NCBI GenBank assembly: GCA_013115145.1
Contig: JAAPAO010000009.1
Location: 1-64,000 of the forward strand
DNA: 64,000 nt
Reading direction: 5' to 3'
From: Perkinsus chesapeaki ATCC PRA-425
Lineage: Eukaryota > Protista > Perkinsozoa
The notes below the pieces were generated by a model. It was not told the DNA's origin, did no database searches, and saw nothing but the letters and a program-made list of their open reading frames with translations. Below, one piece after another: positions 13,353 through 46,855 of the stretch; position 1 is the stretch's first letter, and every line of letters starts with the position of its first letter. The position numbers and the translations under genes were made by a program.

Positions 13353-14094
13353 CTCCTTACTATGTCCCCAATCCTCGTGAAATTGAGTTCTCGCCCTCCA
13401 ATAGTTGTTCATCCGGTTTGGTCTCTTATCACCGGTTCATTACCCTTGTTGGTCTCTTTTGGTGGTGGTTCGTCTGCGTTTTATCTAGCTCCTCGCAGTT
13501 GCCATCGTTACTTTAGTCCCCTTCGCACTGGCGAGGGTTTTCCCTTCTTTCCTTGAGTGACAGCAGTGGTGTGTGCCGAACGGCAACTTTTTGATGCCAT
13601 GGTCGGTTGCGTTAACAGTGGCTCATTTTCAGCAGCTGGCATACGAGAGCTCACTTCACCCTCGAAGACTCTTCTCGTTCGCGGCAGTGGAGTGTTCTGG
13701 TCTGAGTCAGCCACCCTTCTGTCTGCTCCGGCCTTGTCGAAGTAGACTGCCTTGTCCGGTCAGTTGGCGTGGAGGCGTGGACATTACTTGTAGAGCGAGT
13801 TTCGCTTTGCCTATATCGGCGATGTTAATTTGTGCAGCATCATTTGTGCGGGGGGGGGTTAGGCGATGATAGATTATTCATCAAGTGATCCAGAACACAT
13901 ACTTTATCTTTAACGGCCCATAGAGGTACCCGACGAGAAAAGCCGCGCAAGTGGTGACACCGTTGCGGTGACGCCGGTTTCGCGACGTCACGGACAGGTC
14001 CCCGAGTGCGCATCGCTCCACTTGCAGGGACTTCGGCAAGGGGCTGCTACTCTTTACTGAGTGTCGATTGTTGTCAGACATTTTACTATCAAAT

Positions 14095-15245
14095 ATGTCA
14101 CTGTCGAACTCGAATGCTGGTCTGGCTATAGGGCTAACTTGCGCTGCTGGTAAGCCCCTTGCCCCACCCCTTGCCTTCACGCTCTGACAGGTTTCGCCAC
14201 TCTACTAGGGTTCCTCATTGCCCTCATTCCGAAGATGAGTGACCCTCGCTACGTTTCCGGCACTTTAGCATTCGCAGCTGGCGTCATGGTCATGGTCAGC
14301 TTCATTGAGATTTTCCCTGAGGCGACTGAGCTGTACCGTATCGCCCTATTTCCCTTTCTGGCCTTTGCTGCCTTCTCAGATTCACTGAGGCCGGCTTCGC
14401 CGAGAACCACGCATTTATGATTAACGTGGCAATCTTTTTCTGTGGTTGTATGATCTGTTTAGTAAGCTCCATCGCTCCATTGGTTCCCCAATCCTCCATC
14501 GTTGCAGGGAATGGATCTGTCAACTAAGCTGTGGGTTTCCCGTCGCCAAACGACCACTAAAGATGCCATCATCTCTGATGCACCTATGTTCGATCCCATT
14601 GTCGTACGTTTGCCGGCGCGTTCTCTCGGCTTCAGCGAGTATCTTTAGGAAAACGGCTCCACTAGAACATCGAGCAGTCTGCTCACGACAGGTCTACTGA
14701 CGGCAGCAGCCCTAACTCTTCACAATTTTCCGGAGGGTATTGTCACCTTTCTTGGCACCCTCGAGAACGCTGACGTCGGAATCTCGTTGGCGGTTGCGAT
14801 TGGCATTCATAACATCCCCGAAGGTAGGCCCACAGTTTCATCAGGCGGCGGCGTCACCGTGGATAGCCCTCAATTGCCAGGTGTAGCCGTGGCCATGCCG
14901 ATACTAACATCTACAGGCTCCAAGATGCAAGCATTTCTGTGGACCCTAGTGTCATCTGTTGCTCAGCCAATCGGAGGTATACTAGCCTGGTTGATCCTTG
15001 GCTCCGTTCTAGGCCCTGCCTCGATTGCAACCATGATGTCTATCACAGCCGGAATAATGGTAAGTATAGCCATCGGTGAAGGTGCTGCTCCTGCGTACCC
15101 TCCATTCCCTCAGGTCTACGTTGGTATTGTTAAGCTTCAGACCGAGGCAACTATGGGCGATGCTACCCATCTCTGGTCTGGATACGGCTTCCTTATAGGA
15201 ATGGCCGTAATGGCATTGTCGCTCGTTCTCTTCAAGATCGGTTAA
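14095..15245 (+). CDS. ZIP-family (ZupT-like) transporter, copy 5
   Basis: MSLSNSNAGLAIGLTCAAG start; TLHNFPEG; GIHNIPEG; AQPIGG; ends LFKIG*. Confidence 0.9.
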
Positions 15246-15609
15246 CCGATTGTAACTTGCACAACTGCCTCCTCCTCCTCTGCTTACTCGTCCTCCATTT
15301 GAATTTTATCACTATTCCGAACTAGTTCCCCTCCAGCACGAGGCTCATAGCCCGCTGCTCTATGAGGGTATATGAGCTGATAATGATCGTCTCGTCGCTC
15401 CATGCGTATTAAGAGCGTCCTATCTCGTCAGTTTCACCAAGCAACCTTTCTGGTCTTGAGTTCTTCCACACCCCAACATCCACTCGCTATGATACGCCTC
15501 ATCGGCATGCTTCAACTCGACACGCTCAACGTTGTTAACATCCTCCATCGCCCCCCCCCTGTGGGGCTAATCTCCCAGCTTACCTCACCAGTTCGCTGTT
15601 GATTCCTCC

Positions 15610-16967
15610 ATGGTCGAATGGAGCAACAATGTCGCCTTAGCCATCGGCTTGACCTGCGCGGCAGGTAACTGCAAATATATCGTCTCTGATTGGAACTAGT
15701 CATCATGCAGGTCTCGCCTCGGTGATTGGATTCCTATTCGCATTCTTGCCCAAAGCAGGCACCCCCCAGTTCCTCGCTGGCTTCCTCGCTCTCTCTGCTG
15801 GAGTTATGACGTTTGTTAGCCTCGTTGAGATCTTCAGCGAAGCCGTTCACATGTAAGCTCCCTTCAGAGAGCCTACCTGAGAAGGACCCGCTGGAAAATT
15901 CTTGCAAGCTTGTGTCAAAGCTGTCCCTTGTTGATTGAGGACCAGCATGCGAAAACGTGGTGTAGATTGTTGTACGCTTGCTCGAGTTCGACTGTCTTGT
16001 CCATGGTGGTGACTTTGTAAATCACTCGGTCTGTCTTTGATATCCTTTCAATCATTCTGGGTCCATTCAGGCTTGGCGAATCCGGCTACACGGAGGAGCA
16101 TGCGACCAACATTACTATTGGTATCTTCTTTGCTGGCGTCCTCATCACTTTGGTATCGTTGAACACCTGCTTTGAGAATTCCCTTCGTACCCGCCTTCGC
16201 AGGTTCTAGACCTTGTCAGCCACTTTATCACTAGACACAAGGCAGCGCACAGCTCCACAATGGGCAGCCTCGAGGAGGGAGGGAGTCAGTCAACGATCGA
16301 CCCGTGTAATGCCGTACCTTTACAGGAGATGGCGAGCACTGCAGTCAGTTGTTTCACTGCTATCTACTCGCTCAATCGCATCATCTTCAGCAAGTGGTTC
16401 CGACGTGTCCCGCCCCGAACTCCGAAAGCCTCAAGAAGACTGGCATTCTCACCGCCGTAGCAGTTTGCCTCCACAACTTCCCCGAGGGAATTGCTACCTT
16501 CCTGGCGACTCTGGAGAACCCAGAGGCCGGCATCGCTCTGGCAATTGCAATTGGCATTCACAACATACCTGAGGGTACGGCCATCGGCTCATCCACGCGA
16601 ACCTTCCTACTGCCAGGTATCGCCATCGCAATTCCTGTCTACAGGGCGACCAACAGCAAACTTCAAGCATTTTTGTACACATTCGTTGCCGGAATAGCCG
16701 AGCCGATCGGTGGCATTCTGGCATGGCTAATCCTTGCTGACGTCATCGGCCCAGCTGTCATTGCTGTTATGTTGGCCTTAACCGCTGGAATCATGGTCAG
16801 CAATCGTCGCGTCGCTCACTTGGATCCCCTCTGTTCAGGTATACGTTGCCATCCTAAAGTTGCAGGCCCAAGCGGTTTTACACGACCCGAGCAACTTGTG
16901 GGCAGGCAACGGGTTCCTTTTCGGTATGGCCGTTATGGCTCTATCTCTTGTATTTTTCAACATCTAG
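15610..16967 (+). CDS. ZIP-family (ZupT-like) transporter, copy 6
   Basis: MVEWSNNVALAIGLTCAAG start; CLHNFPEG; GIHNIPEG; AEPIGG; ends VFFNI*. Confidence 0.9.
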
Positions 16968-36652: not shown

Positions 36653-39600
36653 TTAAAATGGGACCAGTCTGTTAGGATTGACCCTCTCAATATCCGAGAA
36701 TGAGAACGACTTGCTCTCTGATGATGACACTACAAGTGTCTGCTTTGATGGGGCGTCCTTGCGCGGATGATTAGCGTTGCCTCCAGAATAGGCCAGCACC
36801 GACGGGTCCAGCTCCACTCGACTGTACTCAGGCTGCCACATAGCATCCTGTATCAATTTACCGATATCATCAGGAGGACTGAAGGAGAGTTACGACCCTC
36901 GGGAAAAGCATTGATCACCACCTTATCTGCGCAATGCCCGTATCGAGAGCCTCCTTGACGCAGGCTACAGCAATGGCATGGGAGAGCTCACGAATCCTGT
37001 CTATTTGGGGGTACAAGAGGCCTTGGGCCAGATCCTACAGAGCCAGGCTGATTTTTACTATAAATTTTCCGTTAGATCCTACCGTTTCAGTAACCTTCTC
37101 GGAGAGGGTCTTGGCCGCCAGGTAGAACATAGTATCGGGGATGCTTTTGAACTTGCCCACAATTGCGGCCAGACCAACTCCGGGGAAGATGTACCTGAGC
37201 TTGTGTGAACCACGCAAGTTCGATCCCTGCCACCGACATGTTGTTGCCTTGTCCAGGAATGTAAGTCTTGCCGTTAAAAGAGACGGGCTTGAAGGGTGAG
37301 CCAGTGGCGACCCATGCCTCACCGTTGGTCCACCTAACGCGACCAGTGCCCCAATAACAAAGCGCCGGCGCTAACATGTAAAGTTGCTCTGGCGTAGCCT
37401 CGGCCTTAGGCGTCGGGTTCGACAAGGCGAAAATGACCGGTGCTGGACAGTGCGAGTGCATTTCCTGAGGAAAAGGTATATCCCGGAATCCCCAAGTCTG
37501 CATGATGATACTTTGATGATTTCCTCCGTGAGCGTACCAAACTGTCCACTGAGACCTAGCAGAACCGTAGGCTTCACAACTTGAACAACTTCTAGGAGAC
37601 TGTGGAGAGGCTCGTCATCTCTACAGAACCGGACCTAACACACGACCAAGAGTCGGGCCGCCCGTTCTCGAAGGGCGGAGAGTCGAGTTCCGTGACCAGT
37701 ATTGCAATTCTCTACAGCGGCCTGTATAGCGGCACTACACGATTATTCAAGGTAGGTAAAGCAGTTTGAGGTAACATGAACGCCTTGGATGACAATAGCG
37801 ACCAAGAGTGATAATGTACTAAGCCTGATGGTAATAGGCAGTTGAAATATCATCTGCAAAGGCACGGAAGCTATCACGGGAAAGACTTTCGATTGCCGCA
37901 CAGCGAAATTCTCAACGGAGTTACGACTAAGCGCTGAATGCGTTGCCTTCCTATCTTATATTAGAAAGGAAGCTACCTTGTGCTCTTGCAGCTCTCCGGG
38001 CCTTTTCGAGGTGACAAGCCCTCTGGAATCAACCAGCCAGAACCGCTGTCTGGCCTCCTCGATGGTAAGACCTTGCTGAACCATGGCCGCCACAATGCAA
38101 TCGGCCACTCCCACAGCGGCGGATCCGGCACCGAAGAAGACAATGCGCTGGTCAGCGAGAACCTCGTGCTTGGCCCTCATGGCCGTGAGAAGGCCGGCAA
38201 GGGCCACGGAACCCGTGCCCTGGATATCGTCGTTGAAGCATAGGATCTGATCCCTGTAGCGCTGCAGCAGAGGGAAGGCATGATCGTTGGTGAAGTCCTC
38301 AAACTGGATCAGGACGCCGGGCCAACGAGATCGAACAGCATCGACGAACTCGTCAACAACGGCGTAGTACTCCTCGCCGGTGATTCTGTTGTGACGCTCA
38401 CCGAGGTAGAAAGGATCACCGAGAAGGTCCTGGTTGTTGGTACCGATATCGATGACAACAGGTACAGTACGTCCAGGGTTAATACCAGCACAGGCAACAT
38501 AAAGGGAAAGCTTACCAATAGGGATGCCCATACCATTCGTACCAAGATCACCCAATCCAAGAATACGAGAACCATCGGTTACAACGATAATATCGGCATC
38601 ACGGACATTGCTGTTCCATACGACTTGTTTGAAGTTGCCTTTTTCAGAGAGATTGAAGTAGATACCGCGGGAGCCCCTAAATATTCTATCAAAGTCCTTA
38701 CAAGCCTCCCCAACAGACGGTGTGTAGACTATCGGCATCAAACGGGTAATGTTATCGAGCAGCAGACGGAAGTACAAGGTCTCGTTCCTATTGTGAACCC
38801 CCTCCAAGTAGATATAGCGGCCAATGTCAGTGTCCTTAGTATCCAACTGCTTGAGACATCTTTGCACTTGCACATCAATATCGAGCACCTTCGGCGGCAG
38901 TAACCCTACGAGACCTAGCTCTTCCCTTTCGACCTCGGTGAAGGCCTCGGCTTTGTTATATACCGGGTTTCTCATGAGGTGAAGGCCTCTCTCGTAGACA
39001 GTAGCCACCTTGCCCGACTCAGGACCAGATAATCTCACGCCCGGAGTGTTCATTGGATCGATGACGCCCATTTGGATTTGAAGCAGGACTTGTCTGGCCG
39101 AGTTAAGAAAAGCATCTCGAACCCGCTGTCCGGCCTTGGCGGAGGTCTCCATGAACAGAATGCCATTTGATCTAGCAAAGGTGGCGGCCTCCTCAGCAGG
39201 AACTTCACGACCGAGAAGATCGGCCTTGTTACCGATAAGAACCTTGGTGACGTTCTTGTTGAGAGTTGGTAGATTTTCCTTTATAAACTCGATAAGCTCC
39301 TCGTAGGTTTTACGCTGTCCGACGTCGTAAACAAAAAAGATAACGGCGGAGCCTCTGCAGTAGGACGCGGTGAACTTGCCCCACACAGTGTCCCAAATCT
39401 GCAGCTTCACTCTGTTCTCGTCTAGATTGATAATCGTCTTTGAAAACTCCACACAGTCGGTCGGAGTCGAGCTCACCCTAAAGACATTCTCGGTAAACAT
39501 CAACCTCAGATTCGTCTTCCCGACCCCGGGTGGGCCTACTAGGGCATACTGGAGGGCATGAGTCCAACGATGGAGGTGCGGCGAGGCGCTCTGGCGATGG

Positions 39601-39749
39601 TAGAGCTCAGCCAGGACCAAGTGGTACCATTCAATAAGGGCCTCGGTCGGCGCAGCGGCCACTATGTCGTCCATAGGTAGCATGCGAACATCAAAGTTGG
39701 CTTTACTGCCATTGGCAGCACCTTGCTGAACCACATTGATTGAGGGCAT
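36653..39749 (-). CDS. Rab2-like GTPase domain-malic enzyme fusion protein, copy 1
   Basis: One 597-codon uninterrupted frame contains [19 protein letters not shown] and ETSAK, then [47 protein letters not shown] and GAGSAAVG. Later short exons give [24 protein letters not shown] and MWQPEY. Confidence 0.9.
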
Positions 39750-40390: not shown

Positions 40391-43181
40391 CTACATGAAC
40401 TGGCTTGGGTTCACTCTCTCCATATCGGTGAACGAGAAGGCCTTGTTCTGAATGGTACCAACACTGAGCTTAGTTTTATCCTGACTAGGACCAACACCAG
40501 AGCCTTGGCCGGAGAAGGCGAAGACTGAGGGGTCCAACTCAGTGTGGGCGTATTCGGGCTGCCACATGTGATCCCAGACGAACTTGTCAAGATCGTCAGG
40601 TCGCCTAAAAAAGTGAAATTACGCACAACATAGTAGTAGTGAAAAGCTCACTTGATGCAGGCGATGCCGAGATCGAATGCCTCCTTGATGCATGCCACCG
40701 CAATGTCGTGAGAAAGTTCACGGATACGAGTGAGCTGAGGGTACAAAGTGCCGTGAGAGATATCCTCTGGGGTGACTCTCTCGGCAAGAGTCTTGGCGGC
40801 AGTGTAGAACATCGAATCAGGGATCCACTTGAACTTGCCAACAATACCGGCAAGACCGACACCAGGGAAGATGTACCTGATGAGAGACAAATAAATGGAC
40901 TAGAGATAAGGAGACGTCGCCCTACATGTTATTGCCCTGACCGGCCTTGTAGACCTTGCCATTGTAAGTAACAGGTCCGAAGGGGGAGCCGGTGCACACC
41001 CAAGCCTTACCCTCGGTCCACCTGAAGGGAGAATGAAATACAAGTCAACAACCAAGAGGAGTGACGGCTTACGTATAGAGCTGCTCGGGAGTTGCCTCGG
41101 CCTTCGGTGTGGGGTTGGAAAGAGCGAAGATGATTGGCTCTGGGCAGTTAGCGTACATTGCCTGAGAACCGAATACACAAATGTCTATCAGCACCTTTTA
41201 GCTACCTTAACAACGTCCTCAGTGAAGGAGCCAGATTGTCCACTAAGACCAAGAAGGACAGTGGGCTTGACACTCTTGACCACCTCGAGGAGGCTGGTCA
41301 TAGGCTCCTCGTCATCGCGGCAATAGGGAACCTGGAATAAGACTTAATCACTATCGAAAAGTCTTGAGCAAGTCTCACCTTATGGTCCTGCATAGTGCCA
41401 CCGCGCTTCCACGTAACAAGGCCCTTGGAATCGACGAACCAGAAACGCTTCCTGGCGTCCTCGGGCGTAAGACCATCATGAACCATGGCAGCAACAATGC
41501 AGTCGGCAATACCAATAGCAGCAGCACCGGCACCGAGGAAGACGATTCTCTGGTCCTCCAACTTCTCCTTCTTAACCTTCATAGCGCTCACAATACCGGC
41601 GAGAGCGACGGAACCAGTTCCCTGGATATCATCGTTGAAACATAGCATGCTCTCCTGATAACGCTTGAGAAGAGGGAAGGCATGATCGTTGGTGAAGTCC
41701 TCGAACTGGATCAGGACGCCGGGCCAACGAGACTTCACGGCATCGACAAACTCGTCAACAACGGCGTAGTACTCCTCACCATTGATCCTGCTGTGACGCT
41801 CACCGAGATACATGTCATCACCGAGAAGGTCCTGGTTGTTGGTACCGATATCGATAACAACAGGTACAGTACGTCCAGGGTTAATACCAGCACAGGCAAC
41901 ATAAAGGGAAAGCTTACCAATAGGGATGCCCATACCATTCGTACCAAGATCACCCAATCCAAGAATACGAGAACCATCGGTTACAACGATAATATCGGCA
42001 TCACGAACGGGACTGTTCCAAACCATCTGCTTGAAATTGCCTTTCTCGGATAAGTTGAAGTAAAGGCCGCGAGCGTTACGGAAGATATGACCGAACATCT
42101 GGCAAGCCTTACCGACCACAGGAGTGTAGACAATGGGCATCATCTCAGTAATATGGTCACAAAGCAACTTGAAGTAAAGAGTCTCGTTCCTGTCATGCAG
42201 ACTCTCCAAGTAAATGTACTTCTCAATATCATTGGAGTTCTGCAAGAACTGCTGATAGCACCTTCTGGACTGGACGTCGAGATCGAGCACCTTAGGAGGC
42301 AGGAGACCGACCAGACCAAGATCTTCACGCTCACTGTCGGTGAATGCTTCAGCCTTGTTAACAACTGAATTACGGAGAAGGTTGCTGCCGCGCTCGGTGA
42401 CAGTTTGAACCTTTCCGTCATTCCGGCCAGCAGAGCGGATACCCTTGGTGGCGTTGGGGTCTATCATGCCCATCTGGAGCTGCAAGAGTACTTGCCTGGC
42501 AGAGTTGAAGAAGCAGTCTCTGACATGAAGGCCGCTCTTGGCAGAGGTCTCCATGAACAACAAACCGTTCTCGCGGGCAAAACTGGCGGCTTCCTCAGCG
42601 GTCACTTCACGGCCGAGCAAATCAGCCTTGTTGCCGATAAGAACCTTAGTAGTAGATCTGTCGAGTGAGGGAAGAGTGTCATTGATGAACTTGACCAATT
42701 CGTCGTAGGTATCACGCCTTGTGAGATCATATACGAAGAATATGATAGCTGCACCATGGCAATATGAAGAGGTGTACTTGCCCCAGACAGTATCCCACAT
42801 CTGAAGCTTCAGTCTCTCATTGTCGATGTTGACAATGGTCTTGGAGAATTCGACACCCTTAGTAGGAGTTGAGGCAACCCGGAAAACATTCTCAGTAAAC
42901 ATGAGTCTTAGATTAGTCTTTCCCACACCAGAGGGGCCAACGAGGGCATACTGGAGGGAATAGGACCAATCGTGGAGATGGCGAGAGGTAGTCTGTCGCT
43001 GGTAGAGCTCAGAAGTGAGAAGATGGTACCACTCAATCAGAGCCTCAGTGGGAGCCGCGGCGACAATATCCTGCATAGGTAGCAGGCGCACATCAAAGTT
43101 GGCCTTGCAGTTGACCGTCTGAACGCGGGTAGGCACAGAGAGCGATGCTGATGCAGACTTCTTAACAGTATTAGATGCCAT
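40391..43181 (-). CDS. Rab2-like GTPase domain-malic enzyme fusion protein, copy 2
   Basis: One 627-codon uninterrupted frame contains [22 protein letters not shown] and ETSAK, then all malic enzyme core motifs ([13 protein letters not shown]). Later exons give [24 protein letters not shown] and end ERVNPSQFM*. Confidence 0.9.
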
Positions 43182-44309: not shown

Positions 44310-44505
44310 GCAGCCTAAGGCTTTTAAGAAGGGCTAAGTTACCATTGAAGACCTCGTTTCCGGTTCCCGTACTTTGGTTAAGTCGGTCAATTGCTCGATG
44401 AACTTCTGTGTAGGTTTCGAGTGTGTTTGGTTATTTTCGAGCAATCACCGCCGTCGGCGTGCCTGTCTGTCTAGTCAACCTCCTTACTTGATACTATTCC
44501 GCATT

Positions 44506-46855
44506 ATGGAGAAATCTAATCTCATTGTTAACTACCTCCCGTCGCACATTCAAGAGGGTGACCTTGCCGAGATGTTCGAGCCTTTCGGGGCCTATCAGTC
44601 TGTTAAAATCGTAACGCTCTTCCACCTCGGCAGTTCCCCGTCTCTCGGGCCTTCTCAGGTCCGGGATAAGAATACCGGGATGTCCATGGGCTTCGGTTTC
44701 GTCAACTTCGAAGAGAACGCCTCCGCTGAGGCGGCTGTTAAGGAGCTCAATGGTCTGGAGCTGCCGCAGCATCCTGGCTCATGGCGAGGGCCTGGGTAGC
44801 CCGAGGTGTTCTTTGCACTGCTGAGTTGGTGGCATCAGATCTAAGCCGATGAAAAAGATAAAGGTGAGCATCGCAAGACCCGCTTGGAAGGCCAACATTC
44901 ACAGCAACCTGTAAGAACGAGCAGGTCGTCCGAGGTTAGTACGCGAGCTTGGAAGATACGTCGCTAACATCCCGCCAGAGTACGACGCCGAGCAAATTCG
45001 GGCGTTGTTTGGACCGGTCTATGGGCCGCAAATTGAGCACCTCAGAATGCTCAGAGACAACAGCGGCGGTAAAGTCCCTCCCGGTAACTAGGCCGTGGAA
45101 TTGAACACTGGAATGTTGCGTTTCAGAGCTGAACGACGAGGAGGATACAGGTTCTAATAACAGAGGCAAATTCAGAGGGATAGCGGTGATCAGGCAAGCC
45201 GATTTCAGTCGGCAAGGCGTTTCCGAATCCTCCCGGCGCAGGTTCGATACCGAGGAGAATGCTACTGCCGCTATGGAGAAGTTCAACGGGACTTGTGTAA
45301 GGCACCTCATCGAGTAGTTGAAGCATCTCGTCCTCCAGGTACCGGACATGCCGGAGTCTCACCCTGCACTGCAAATCAAACCATGGCGGCCTGAGTTCCG
45401 AGCTGACAGGGTGCCGCAGGGTAAGGCAGTTGGATATTCTAAGCAGAACTCCAGAGTAGCTGCCAAGGCCTGGGTCTGCTCGCTATGTAATTTTTAGGGG
45501 TCCTCCTCAAGCGATCAGACCAATCGGTCGGGCGAGGCGCACGGGTAAGCTCTGATGCGCTTGCCTTTCTATTGTAATAATATCTCAGTCGATCAAGAAG
45601 GAGCACTGCAAGCCGCTCGTCTGGTAAGACGACTGTCAGTGACCGTTGGGGATGCCCCGTCACTAGGCACAAGCGCGGCCTTGGCGGCGGCGTTGGGAGC
45701 CGGCGCAGCGGCCACTCAAGAGGCCGCCAATAAAAGCGGTAAAGCTTCTAGCAATAATCGAAAATGGGTCAAAGGAGTTCCTAAATTACCAATTGATGTC
45801 GGAGTTACTCTTACGAACGGTGCTTGATATATATCCTGCAGAGCGGTGCGATGGAGGAGTCCCCGTGGGCGGCGGCGTTAGATCCCAGCGATAGGAGCTG
45901 CCGGCCTTCGGCAAGAAGCCGCTTTTCTGGGTAGCATGGTGATTTAGTCACAACGGCCAGATGTTTTGATGTCTCGCAGTCGTTCAAGCTCCAAAAGGGC
46001 GACTGCCAGCCACGATGAAGGTTTACAGAGAGCGACTATTGATGGGATCAGCATCCTTCGGCCTTCCCAGTACTGCCCGCCTAGTGGACGCCCTCATTTC
46101 GCGTTTCAGACTGCCCATCGCCCCTGCAAGCGATGAGGCTGCAGCCCCTGGAAGGGGGGCTGTCAACGAATCTACCGCGTCGCCATCGACTAGTCATTGC
46201 TCGCTACCTTGCCGCGATTGTCAGTATCACCACAGCTACTGCGGGGCAGCACAAGCTCCTCCTGTTGTTAATAGTGTTGTCCTTCCCGGGCATTACCCGA
46301 ACGGTAGGTAAGCTTCGCTTATTAAGCCTCATAGAGATAGCAGGTGCAGCCGGAACATCAGCATACTGTACACCTATCAAACAAGCATCGCGGGTACGTT
46401 AACTATTGGAATCTCATCAAGTAGTCGTCTCAGGCTGCATTCGAAACCCCCGGTAGAGATGCTCCTTCTGTCATTGCTCCGATTACGATATCACCACAGC
46501 TAGAACACGGCATGAAAACCCTTTTCTATGACCAACCGGGTAAGTCGACAATTTCGGGATGATATCGTCATACGAGCTGCTAGGTATCGTTTCTTCTAGC
46601 GTGCAGATCGGTCCCGACAGGAGCTGGGGTTGTGCAAGTTTCAGTAGTCTTGGAGACGCCGAGCATGCCGTTCGGTCTCTCTACGGTGCGAACTTGTTCG
46701 CTTCAATACGGCATAGTTGTAATCTAGGCGCTCAAGTGGCAGATGGTATGAAGCTCTGCGTGGAGCTTTTCCCTTATTCGAGCCAGTTCGACAACACCGC
46801 CAGTGTTCATCAATTTAAAAGGGCATCATCCTCACCAGTTCCCACGCCTTGTTGA
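44506..46855 (+). CDS. ELAV/Sex-lethal-like multi-RRM RNA-binding protein, multi-exon
   Basis: SNLIVNYLP (RNP2); VRDKNTGMSMGFGFVNF (RNP1); AVKELNGL; IKVSIARP; further RRM-like exons at ~44960-45300 and ~46450-46790. The 3' end is approximate. Confidence 0.8.

Follow-up and report, generated by a model that had tools for sequence, protein, structure and literature searches.

A Rab-derived domain with a rebuilt switch II fused to the malic enzyme of Perkinsus: a putative nucleotide-binding, hydrolysis-deficient module

Rab-family small GTPases are switches of membrane traffic, and the locus described here raises the question of what such a domain may do once it has been joined to a metabolic enzyme and part of the switch itself has been rebuilt. 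The locus lies in a stretch of 64,000 nucleotides from Perkinsus chesapeaki ATCC PRA-425 (contig JAAPAO010000009.1, positions 1 to 64,000 of the forward strand; hereafter, the window), which carries, in tandem on the minus strand, two genes (copy 1 and copy 2) in which a Rab-like G domain precedes a malic enzyme. An initial annotation had noted that the G3/switch II region of both G domains is altered, and had proposed that the domain is a nucleotide sensor or a pseudoGTPase rather than a product of neutral decay. Based on the analyses presented here, we consider it probable, at roughly 0.6, that it is a Rab-derived, non-prenylated, hydrolysis-deficient, nucleotide-binding module that acts in cis on the malic enzyme. 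It should be noted that the proteins are already public under the annotation 'Malic enzyme', and that atypical G domains and regulatory modules fused to enzymes are both known kinds; no paper describing a Rab-malic enzyme fusion was found in the literature that we searched.

The minus-strand open reading frame (ORF) at 37956-39749, of 597 amino acids (aa), matches residues 1-592 of the P. chesapeaki GenBank protein KAF4677703.1 at 100% identity; this protein is 843 aa long and has 'Malic enzyme' as its sole annotation. The ORF of copy 2 (41298-43181, minus strand) matches KAF4677704.1 (850 aa), and the two copies are 76% identical across 577 residues. The order within the single exon is the same in each: a conserved N-terminal extension of ~47 aa, a G domain resembling those of Rab2, Rab14 and Rab4, a linker of ~30 aa, and the malic enzyme. 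In each ORF, Pfam detects a Ras-family domain and, behind it in the same frame, the N-terminal domain of malic enzyme and the beginning of its NAD-binding domain; Rab domain, linker and both enzyme domains are also encoded by a single ORF in P. marinus (L004) and P. olseni (L005). Because the Rab and enzyme domains share one uninterrupted ORF in both copies, no splice call is needed for the fusion.

Membership of the Rab family is indicated by a significant match to the Ras profile of Pfam (PF00071; 121.6 and 119.2 bits for the two copies versus a cutoff of 21.6) together with a Rab-type fold. An AlphaFold2 (AF2) model of residues 1-262, for which the Rab alignment was used as input, has a Rab core with a predicted local distance difference test (pLDDT) score of >90, dropping to ~85 in switch II and 83 in switch I. 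The top Foldseek matches of the model are Rab11, Rab2, Rab4, Rab8 and Rab14, mostly in their GTP-analogue forms, with template modelling (TM) scores of 0.85-0.92 and root-mean-square deviations of 1.5-2 Å. For the placement within the family we used the ranking of solved structures, the named database matches and the tail motif. The solved relatives of both copies rank in the order Rab2B, Rab14, Rab2A and Rab4, followed by Rab11/25; the named database matches are overwhelmingly Rab2, at ~40% identity; and the linker opens with IQxGxxD...G, the pattern with which the C-terminal tail, of the Rab2/4/14 type, begins in the aligned Rab2 homologues. The RabF2 motif (KLQ[IM]W) and the residues of the hydrophobic triad (F of VEF, W of IW and Y of SY) are likewise kept. 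The ranking, the named matches and the tail motif suggest that the domain belongs to the Rab2/14/4 group and is most like Rab2. Unlike Rab2, Rab14 and Rab4, however, the fusion domain is devoid of DxxGQ, has a short switch II, shows GP[PS]G in its P-loop where those proteins have GD[TS]G, and carries the conserved extension at its N-terminus. It also has no C-terminal Cys: nothing in it matches the Cys column that is near-invariant among the Rab2 homologues, and the ORF runs on into the malic enzyme. Because it lacks prenylation as well as DxxGQ in a switch II of full length, both of which define a Rab, the domain should be named Rab-derived or Rab-like, and not Rab. Separate, canonical Rab2 genes containing WDTAGQE are present in P. 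chesapeaki and P. marinus (P0165, P0192).

The most conspicuous feature of the domain is its switch II, which in both copies reads WDTVWGK[FY]T.SYC[RH]G, with GKFT.SYCRG in the copy-1-type and GKYT.SYCHG in the copy-2-type orthologues. In the HMMER alignments to Rab2B and Rab14, as well as in a MAFFT alignment of 104 sequences, a gap of exactly four residues falls opposite the G-Q-E-S of the near-invariant WDTAGQESFRSITRSYYRG, in agreement with the deletion of about four residues that had been described initially. The position of the gap within switch II is a choice of the alignment, and an alternative is that the Gly of WG is the G3 Gly moved by one residue; in any alignment, switch II is without the Gln and four residues short. 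It had been claimed that both the G3 Gly and the Q61-equivalent are replaced: the loss of the Gln holds under every alignment, and the Gly may instead have been shifted by one position. The canonical Rab signature of DxxGQ with a full switch II (RabF3 and RabF4) is absent, RabF3 being truncated and lacking the Gln; what is found is a GTPase fold with substituted catalytic residues, in which the Gln and the in-register G3 Gly are missing. In the AF2 model, the α2 helix consists of six residues only (127-132), preceded by the loop TVWGKF.

The other G motifs are kept. The G1 of copy 1 reads GPPGVGKT and that of copy 2 GPSGVGKT, the switch-I Thr (T97) is retained in TPTDCVEF of copy 1 and TPTKGVEF of copy 2, and GP[PS]GVGKT, T97, NKAD and ETSAK are present in 6/6 genomic copies. 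Translations and alignments therefore bear out the initial annotation in that G3 is altered in both copies with G1, NKAD and SAK intact, and translation verifies the change of GVEF to CVEF in copy 1, where the residue following the Asp varies by lineage, being Thr in P. marinus and Cys in the other two species. At the level of sequence, the view that the domain has retained its binding motifs but altered those for hydrolysis and switching is correct. The region first highlighted in copy 1, 39370-39480, comprises residues 91-127, from switch I to early switch II, while the position of ~42765-42810 given for G3 of copy 2 is off by ~12 bases. The P-loop itself is odd for a Rab, with GP[PS]GVGKT versus GD[ST]GVGKS and hence a Pro in place of a near-universal Asp; in copy 1, a second Pro occupies the position equivalent to Gly12 of Ras.

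WDTVWGK is present in 8/8 Rab-malic enzyme proteins of Perkinsus (P. chesapeaki, P. olseni and P. marinus) and in 0 of the ~387 other Rab-containing proteins retrieved; of the motifs among the 395 proteins collected in all, 327 read WDTAGQE. Among these proteins the switch II motif is unique to Perkinsus, which is beyond chance. P. olseni and P. marinus likewise have the fusion with this switch II, arranged in tandem and located beside the same gene for a protein with an RNA recognition motif (RRM). When 1.84 billion cluster representatives were searched exhaustively with HMMER, no close relative outside Perkinsus was found, the other matches being ordinary Rabs at ≤45% identity or multi-Rab proteins. 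Since copy-1-type and copy-2-type orthologues recur across species, the duplication is older than the split of the three species, and the rebuilding of switch II predates both the duplication and the separation of P. marinus, P. olseni and P. chesapeaki, i.e., it is one ancestral event. Parallel change in the two copies was considered and rejected: the same state is found in both paralogues of all three species, for which a single event is the simplest explanation. The initial argument from the same change in both paralogs consequently survives in part: the state is indeed identical, but it reflects one event, which counts once, and not two changes. Since that ancestral event, the state of switch II has been kept independently in six lineages.

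To what extent the domain is constrained was analysed with codon alignments of exon 1 (the window plus the loci L001, L002, L004 and L005) by the Nei-Gojobori method. Between orthologues, nonsynonymous divergence (dN) is 0.05-0.08 in the Rab domain and 0.04-0.07 in the exon-1 part of the malic enzyme, and between paralogues it is 0.19-0.22 and 0.16-0.18, respectively. The corresponding values for the linker are 0.07-0.17 and about 0.46-0.58, and those for the N-terminal extension, the most constrained partition between orthologues, are 0.01-0.05 and 0.11-0.14. Synonymous divergence (dS) between species is >1 or not computable (saturated), and the ratio dN/dS (omega) is about 0.05 where computable. 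Because dN is similar in the two moieties while dS is saturated, the G domain is constrained as strongly as the catalytic enzyme. Within the domain, only 1/25 of the nucleotide-contacting motif positions is variable among the six sequences, versus 55/160 positions of the whole domain (hypergeometric P = 1.5e-4). Of the eight positions of switch I five vary, its Thr being invariant, and of the eight in the distal half of switch II three; WDTVWGK, NKAD and ETSAK are invariant in all six. The codons of the motifs, including those of WDTVWGK, differ synonymously between species and copies, and a sliding-window analysis showed that gene conversion between the paralogues is limited to malic enzyme residues 376-495, leaving the Rab part untouched; the conservation is therefore due to independent purifying selection on each copy. 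The first description of the domain as something other than a product of neutral decay is thus well supported by the low dN with saturated dS, the conserved contact motifs and the synonymous codon differences, and across the orthologues there is no relaxed constraint on the G motifs. The gene-conversion tract, inside the malic enzyme part, corresponds to 38265-38624 in copy 1 and 41667-42026 in copy 2. Its DNA identity is 88-100% between the paralogues within a species (P. chesapeaki, P. olseni) and 73-88% between orthologues; the windows flanking the tract and the entire Rab part have the reverse pattern.

The enzyme moiety can be aligned over its whole length with solved malic enzymes (E about 1e-156), and contains both Pfam domains (PF00390 and PF03949) together with the motifs of the catalytic Tyr and Lys and of the metal-binding Glu, Asp and Asp; GQGNN is among the enzyme motifs kept in the alignment to 9e6m and 6ags. 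The catalytic and metal-binding roles of these motifs, which we take to be those of human ME2 and pigeon malic enzyme, indicate that the moiety is presumably active. Its nearest database relatives are single-domain NAD-malic enzymes of ~560 aa with 55-59% identity (P0397-P0513), encoded on contigs labelled as bacterial metagenome-assembled genomes of SAR324, Marinimicrobia, Fidelibacterota, Armatimonadetes and Xanthomonadales, and no eukaryote other than Perkinsus is present among the best 120 enzyme relatives. This hints at a chimera of a eukaryotic Rab and an enzyme of bacterial origin. The domain A of characterised malic enzymes is located at the dimer interface, near the allosteric site. 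The Rab module joins the enzyme at the N-terminus of domain A, and regulation of assembly or of allostery is therefore geometrically plausible.

These observations lead us to propose the following scenario. A paralogue of the Rab2/14/4 type, minus its prenylation tail, would have been fused in frame to the N-terminus of a catalytically complete malic enzyme in an ancestor of Perkinsus. Before the duplication and the split of the species, switch II would have lost four residues, with which the register of the G3 Gly and the catalytic Gln disappeared. Selection has since kept the nucleotide contacts (P-loop Lys/Thr, switch-I Thr, DxxG Asp, NKAD and SAK) and also the rebuilt WDTVWGK unchanged, leaving switch I and the remainder of switch II free to drift. 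The present-day domain probably still binds GTP or GDP, with NKxD and SAK specifying guanine, and with the P-loop Lys/Thr, the switch-I Thr and the G3 Asp holding the phosphates and Mg. Canonical GTP hydrolysis, and the normal transition by which switch II senses the gamma-phosphate, would both be gone, and because of this the domain is expected to resemble, in its behaviour, those atypical GTPases or pseudoGTPases that bind nucleotide and are deficient in hydrolysis. The pseudoGTPase or nucleotide sensor of the initial annotation is plausible. Without a membrane anchor it would work in cis, as an allosteric/regulatory module, an assembly module or a localisation/targeting module, and the conserved hydrophobic N-terminal helix probably acts together with it. 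This long helix (aa 35-55 of the extension) is predicted with a moderate to low pLDDT of 56-72, and the extension has no Pfam match. A search of sequencing runs listed none containing the stretch, and two RNA runs labelled with the same species yielded one contig of 152 nucleotides, 94% alike, over the extension of copy 2, which does not count as evidence for transcription or for the structure of a transcript. A more specific version, in which the occupancy by GTP/GDP or the identity of the bound nucleotide sets the activity or the oligomeric state of the malic enzyme, so that the domain would be a guanine-nucleotide sensor in cis, is possible but doubtful. If true, it would be the first known Ras-superfamily domain serving as allosteric regulator of a central-carbon enzyme, and would tie both the decarboxylation of malate and the supply of NAD(P)H to a parasite's GTP energy charge.

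Several points weigh against a hydrolysis-deficient module acting in cis. The loss of the Gln in cis alone does not prove that hydrolysis is lost, because the RabGAPs (Rab GTPase-activating proteins, GAPs) of the TBC type supply a Gln in trans. Copy 1 of one P. olseni assembly (GCA_013115135.1; L002:13281-16922) has two 1-bp insertions in the Rab part (near 13468 and 13584), and in addition an insertion of 3,039 bp (13828-16868) after NKADLLGRE, flanked by a shared GAG. The malic enzyme ORF past the insertion stays open, and the gene is uninterrupted in the second P. olseni assembly (L005). The insertion contains ORFs of 360, 186 and 171 aa, for none of which Pfam reports a family. The haplotype may truly be disrupted, with a mobile element, and this allele at least may dispense with the domain; alternatively, the assembly may be in error. 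Also, a full-length AF2 model (predicted TM score 0.70), in which both moieties fold confidently and the confidence of the extension and the linker is not raised, provides no readable evidence of a fixed interface between Rab domain and enzyme. Finally, an enzyme-only isoform, starting for example at the Met of METSAK, may exist.

The alternative that survives best, which we nevertheless regard as rather unlikely, is that the domain is a cycling GTPase in which the shifted Gly of WG takes over the role of the G3 Gly, and a catalytic residue is supplied in trans by a GAP or by the malic enzyme, in which case a genuine on/off switch would control the enzyme or its localisation. This view fits the invariance of G1, the G2 Thr, the G3 Asp, G4 and G5, and the location of the Gly just one position past its canonical place. 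Moreover, TBC GAPs and RapGAP do supply catalytic residues in trans, and many atypical Rabs without the Gln were among the matches (e.g. WDTAGEE, WDTAGHE, WDTAGLE and WDTAGVE), which shows that its loss is tolerated in the family. However, none of the other Rabs retrieved has a switch II that is four residues short, which in the model leaves an α2 of six residues, and switch I, which is normally required for recognition of GAPs, guanine nucleotide exchange factors and effectors, is the most variable part of the domain (5/8 positions).

Would the domain instead be a nucleotide-free scaffold, i.e., a class i pseudoGTPase whose Rab fold serves as interaction or oligomerisation surface for the malic enzyme? 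The lost register of the G3 glycine and the rebuilt switch II would be compatible with such a role, for which AAGAB (PMC12490416) and p190RhoGAP (PMC5593906) are precedents as pure interaction modules, in the terms of class definitions that were taken from papers citing the review by Stiegler and Boggon. In class i, however, the G motifs are degenerate, whereas here GxxxxGKT, NKAD and ETSAK are invariant in six lineages despite saturated dS. These motifs are also significantly better conserved than the remainder of the domain. Such a pattern would be difficult to account for if no guanine nucleotide were bound, and we consider a scaffold improbable.

Better parallels to the proposed hydrolysis-deficient module are Rnd1-3 and RhoH, which are atypical GTPases that bind nucleotide, are hydrolysis-deficient and are constitutively loaded (PMC13236570). 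As in these proteins, the catalytic positions of the fusion domain are substituted and its nucleotide-binding motifs kept, and it may, by analogy, be constitutively loaded as well. The Rnd proteins and RhoH are, on the other hand, free-standing, lipid-anchored members of the Rho family with a full-length switch II, whereas the fusion domain is Rab-derived, has no anchor, is attached to an enzyme and carries a deletion in its switch II. In the protist Entamoeba, the Rab-like proteins EhRabX10 and EhRabX3, whose G3 departs from the canonical form (e.g. DTQDME), have been discussed as pseudoRabs (PMC8514894). In EhRabX10, G2, G4 and G5 are degenerate too (PMC8514894), whereas the Perkinsus domain is altered only in G3/switch II, and the Entamoeba proteins, unlike the Perkinsus domain, are not fused to a metabolic enzyme. 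Judged by its motifs, and within the class definitions mentioned above, the domain thus resembles Rnd/RhoH more than EhRabX10 or the class i pseudoGTPases AAGAB (PMC12490416) and p190RhoGAP (PMC5593906).

It is very improbable that the domain is a decaying relic, a hitch-hiking remnant of the fusion that is kept merely by its position before an essential enzyme. The disrupted P. olseni allele, with its two frameshifts and 3-kb insertion in the Rab part of copy 1 and an open enzyme ORF, is what one would expect of a relic, and several gene models begin at the internal Met of METSAK. These starts, however, are due to contig ends and assembly gaps, and the five other genomic copies from three species contain neither stops nor frameshifts. 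In addition, Rab part and enzyme have equal dN, with omega well under 1, and no segment is better conserved than the N-terminal extension. That gene models or assemblies have artificially joined separate Rab and malic enzyme genes has a negligible probability: models at these loci are often wrong elsewhere (e.g. a P. olseni enzyme merged with the neighbouring actin gene), but the Rab domain and 340 malic enzyme residues lie in an uninterrupted ORF with no intron to mis-call, and this single ORF is seen in both copies of the window and in independent assemblies of three species.

Fusion of regulatory domains to malic enzymes, and of small-GTPase domains to other modules, is known in other forms. 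The chimeric malic enzymes of the MaeB type are bacterial and have a C-terminal, phosphotransacetylase (PTA)-like regulatory domain, and NADP-dependent malic enzymes of 759-791 aa from the PDB appear among our solved-structure matches. The Perkinsus proteins resemble MaeB in being malic enzymes with a fused, putatively regulatory domain, which in their case is N-terminal and of the Ras superfamily instead. Pfam finds Ras/Roc, malic and Malic_M in them and no PTA domain, and their C-terminal ~45 residues are predicted to be disordered. Among multidomain Ras-superfamily proteins, the large Rabs Rab44/45/46, RJL/DNAJC27, the Roco proteins and TRIM23/ARD1 also have a small-GTPase domain covalently joined to another module; most of them keep a canonical G3, and the large Rabs keep prenylation. 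To our knowledge, none of these has a Rab-type domain joined to a central-carbon enzyme.

If the domain is indeed a hydrolysis-deficient module, it would represent a clear case of reuse of a switch protein, which lost its anchor, its Gln and part of switch II, yet was kept on an enzyme through the radiation of a genus. It would also offer a testable system for the general question of what a G domain can do once it no longer cycles, with paralogues that differ in switch I, one allele with a disrupted domain, and an easy enzymatic read-out. In all that we searched, the fusion is restricted to Perkinsus, whose species parasitise oysters and clams and are of economic importance, and it is as such a marker of the lineage and potentially a parasite-specific feature of central metabolism.

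The features of the two genes are listed in Table 1, in which the coordinates of the copy 1 features and those of exon 1, the G domain and G3/switch II of copy 2 were checked by translation.

Table 1. Features of the tandem Rab-malic enzyme fusion genes, in positions of the window
Feature	Position	Strand	Remarks
Copy 1, Rab-malic enzyme fusion gene	36653..39749	-	exon 1 = 39749-37974, last exon = 36880-36656
Copy 1, variable start (aa 1-15)			
Copy 1, conserved N-terminal extension (aa 16-62)	39564..39704	-	lowest dN; helix predicted at aa 35-55
Copy 1, Rab-like G domain (aa 63-222)	39084..39563	-	PF00071 Ras, E = 3e-35
Copy 1, G1/P-loop GPPGVGKT	39513..39536	-	from translation; among six sequences only the third residue varies (P/S)
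Copy 1, switch I TPTDCVEF	39444..39467	-	G2 Thr kept, Gly changed to Cys
Copy 1, G3/switch II	39351..39395	-	no Gln, no in-register DxxG Gly, 4 residues short versus Rabs
Copy 1, G4 NKAD	39219..39230	-	from translation; invariant
Copy 1, G5 ETSAK	39135..39149	-	from translation; invariant
Copy 1, linker (aa 223-252)	38994..39083	-	fastest-evolving partition; low pLDDT at 241-250
Copy 1, malic enzyme, exon-1 part (aa 253-592)	37974..38993	-	PF00390 3.5e-69, PF03949 1e-27
Copy 2, gene, exon 1	41361..43181	-	architecture as in copy 1; later exons reach about 40.4-40.65 kb
Copy 2, N-terminal extension	42966-43106	-	
Copy 2, Rab-like G domain	42486..42965	-	PF00071, E = 1.6e-34
Copy 2, G1/P-loop GPSGVGKT	42915-42938	-	
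Copy 2, G3/switch II	42753..42797	-	from translation

The surroundings of the tandem pair are conserved as well. The gene for the RRM-domain protein (44374-44799 of the window, plus strand; also L001:1-1519, L002:5885-9019 and L005:5875-8456) adjoins copy 2 in P. chesapeaki, and likewise in P. olseni. Actin genes and genes for transporters of the major facilitator superfamily (MFS) are located on the opposite side; since the RRM gene is found on one side and the actin/MFS-transporter genes on the other, the synteny of the pair is conserved. A further malic enzyme locus (P0129) lies between two actin genes in P. marinus (L003:10001-12225; GG685476.1), where an RRM gene is also nearby. Its protein falls into the same 90%-identity cluster as the copy-2-type enzymes, and its 5' part is inside an assembly gap; the locus may be a third copy or a haplotype. 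Past the malic enzyme fold, copy 1 encodes a C-terminal tail of ~45-55 aa (approximately 36656-36790), which has a pLDDT of 29-37 (residues 799-843) and is predicted to be disordered. The tail ends with SFSF[ST]D[IM]ERVNP..., a motif common to both paralogues and to the three species.

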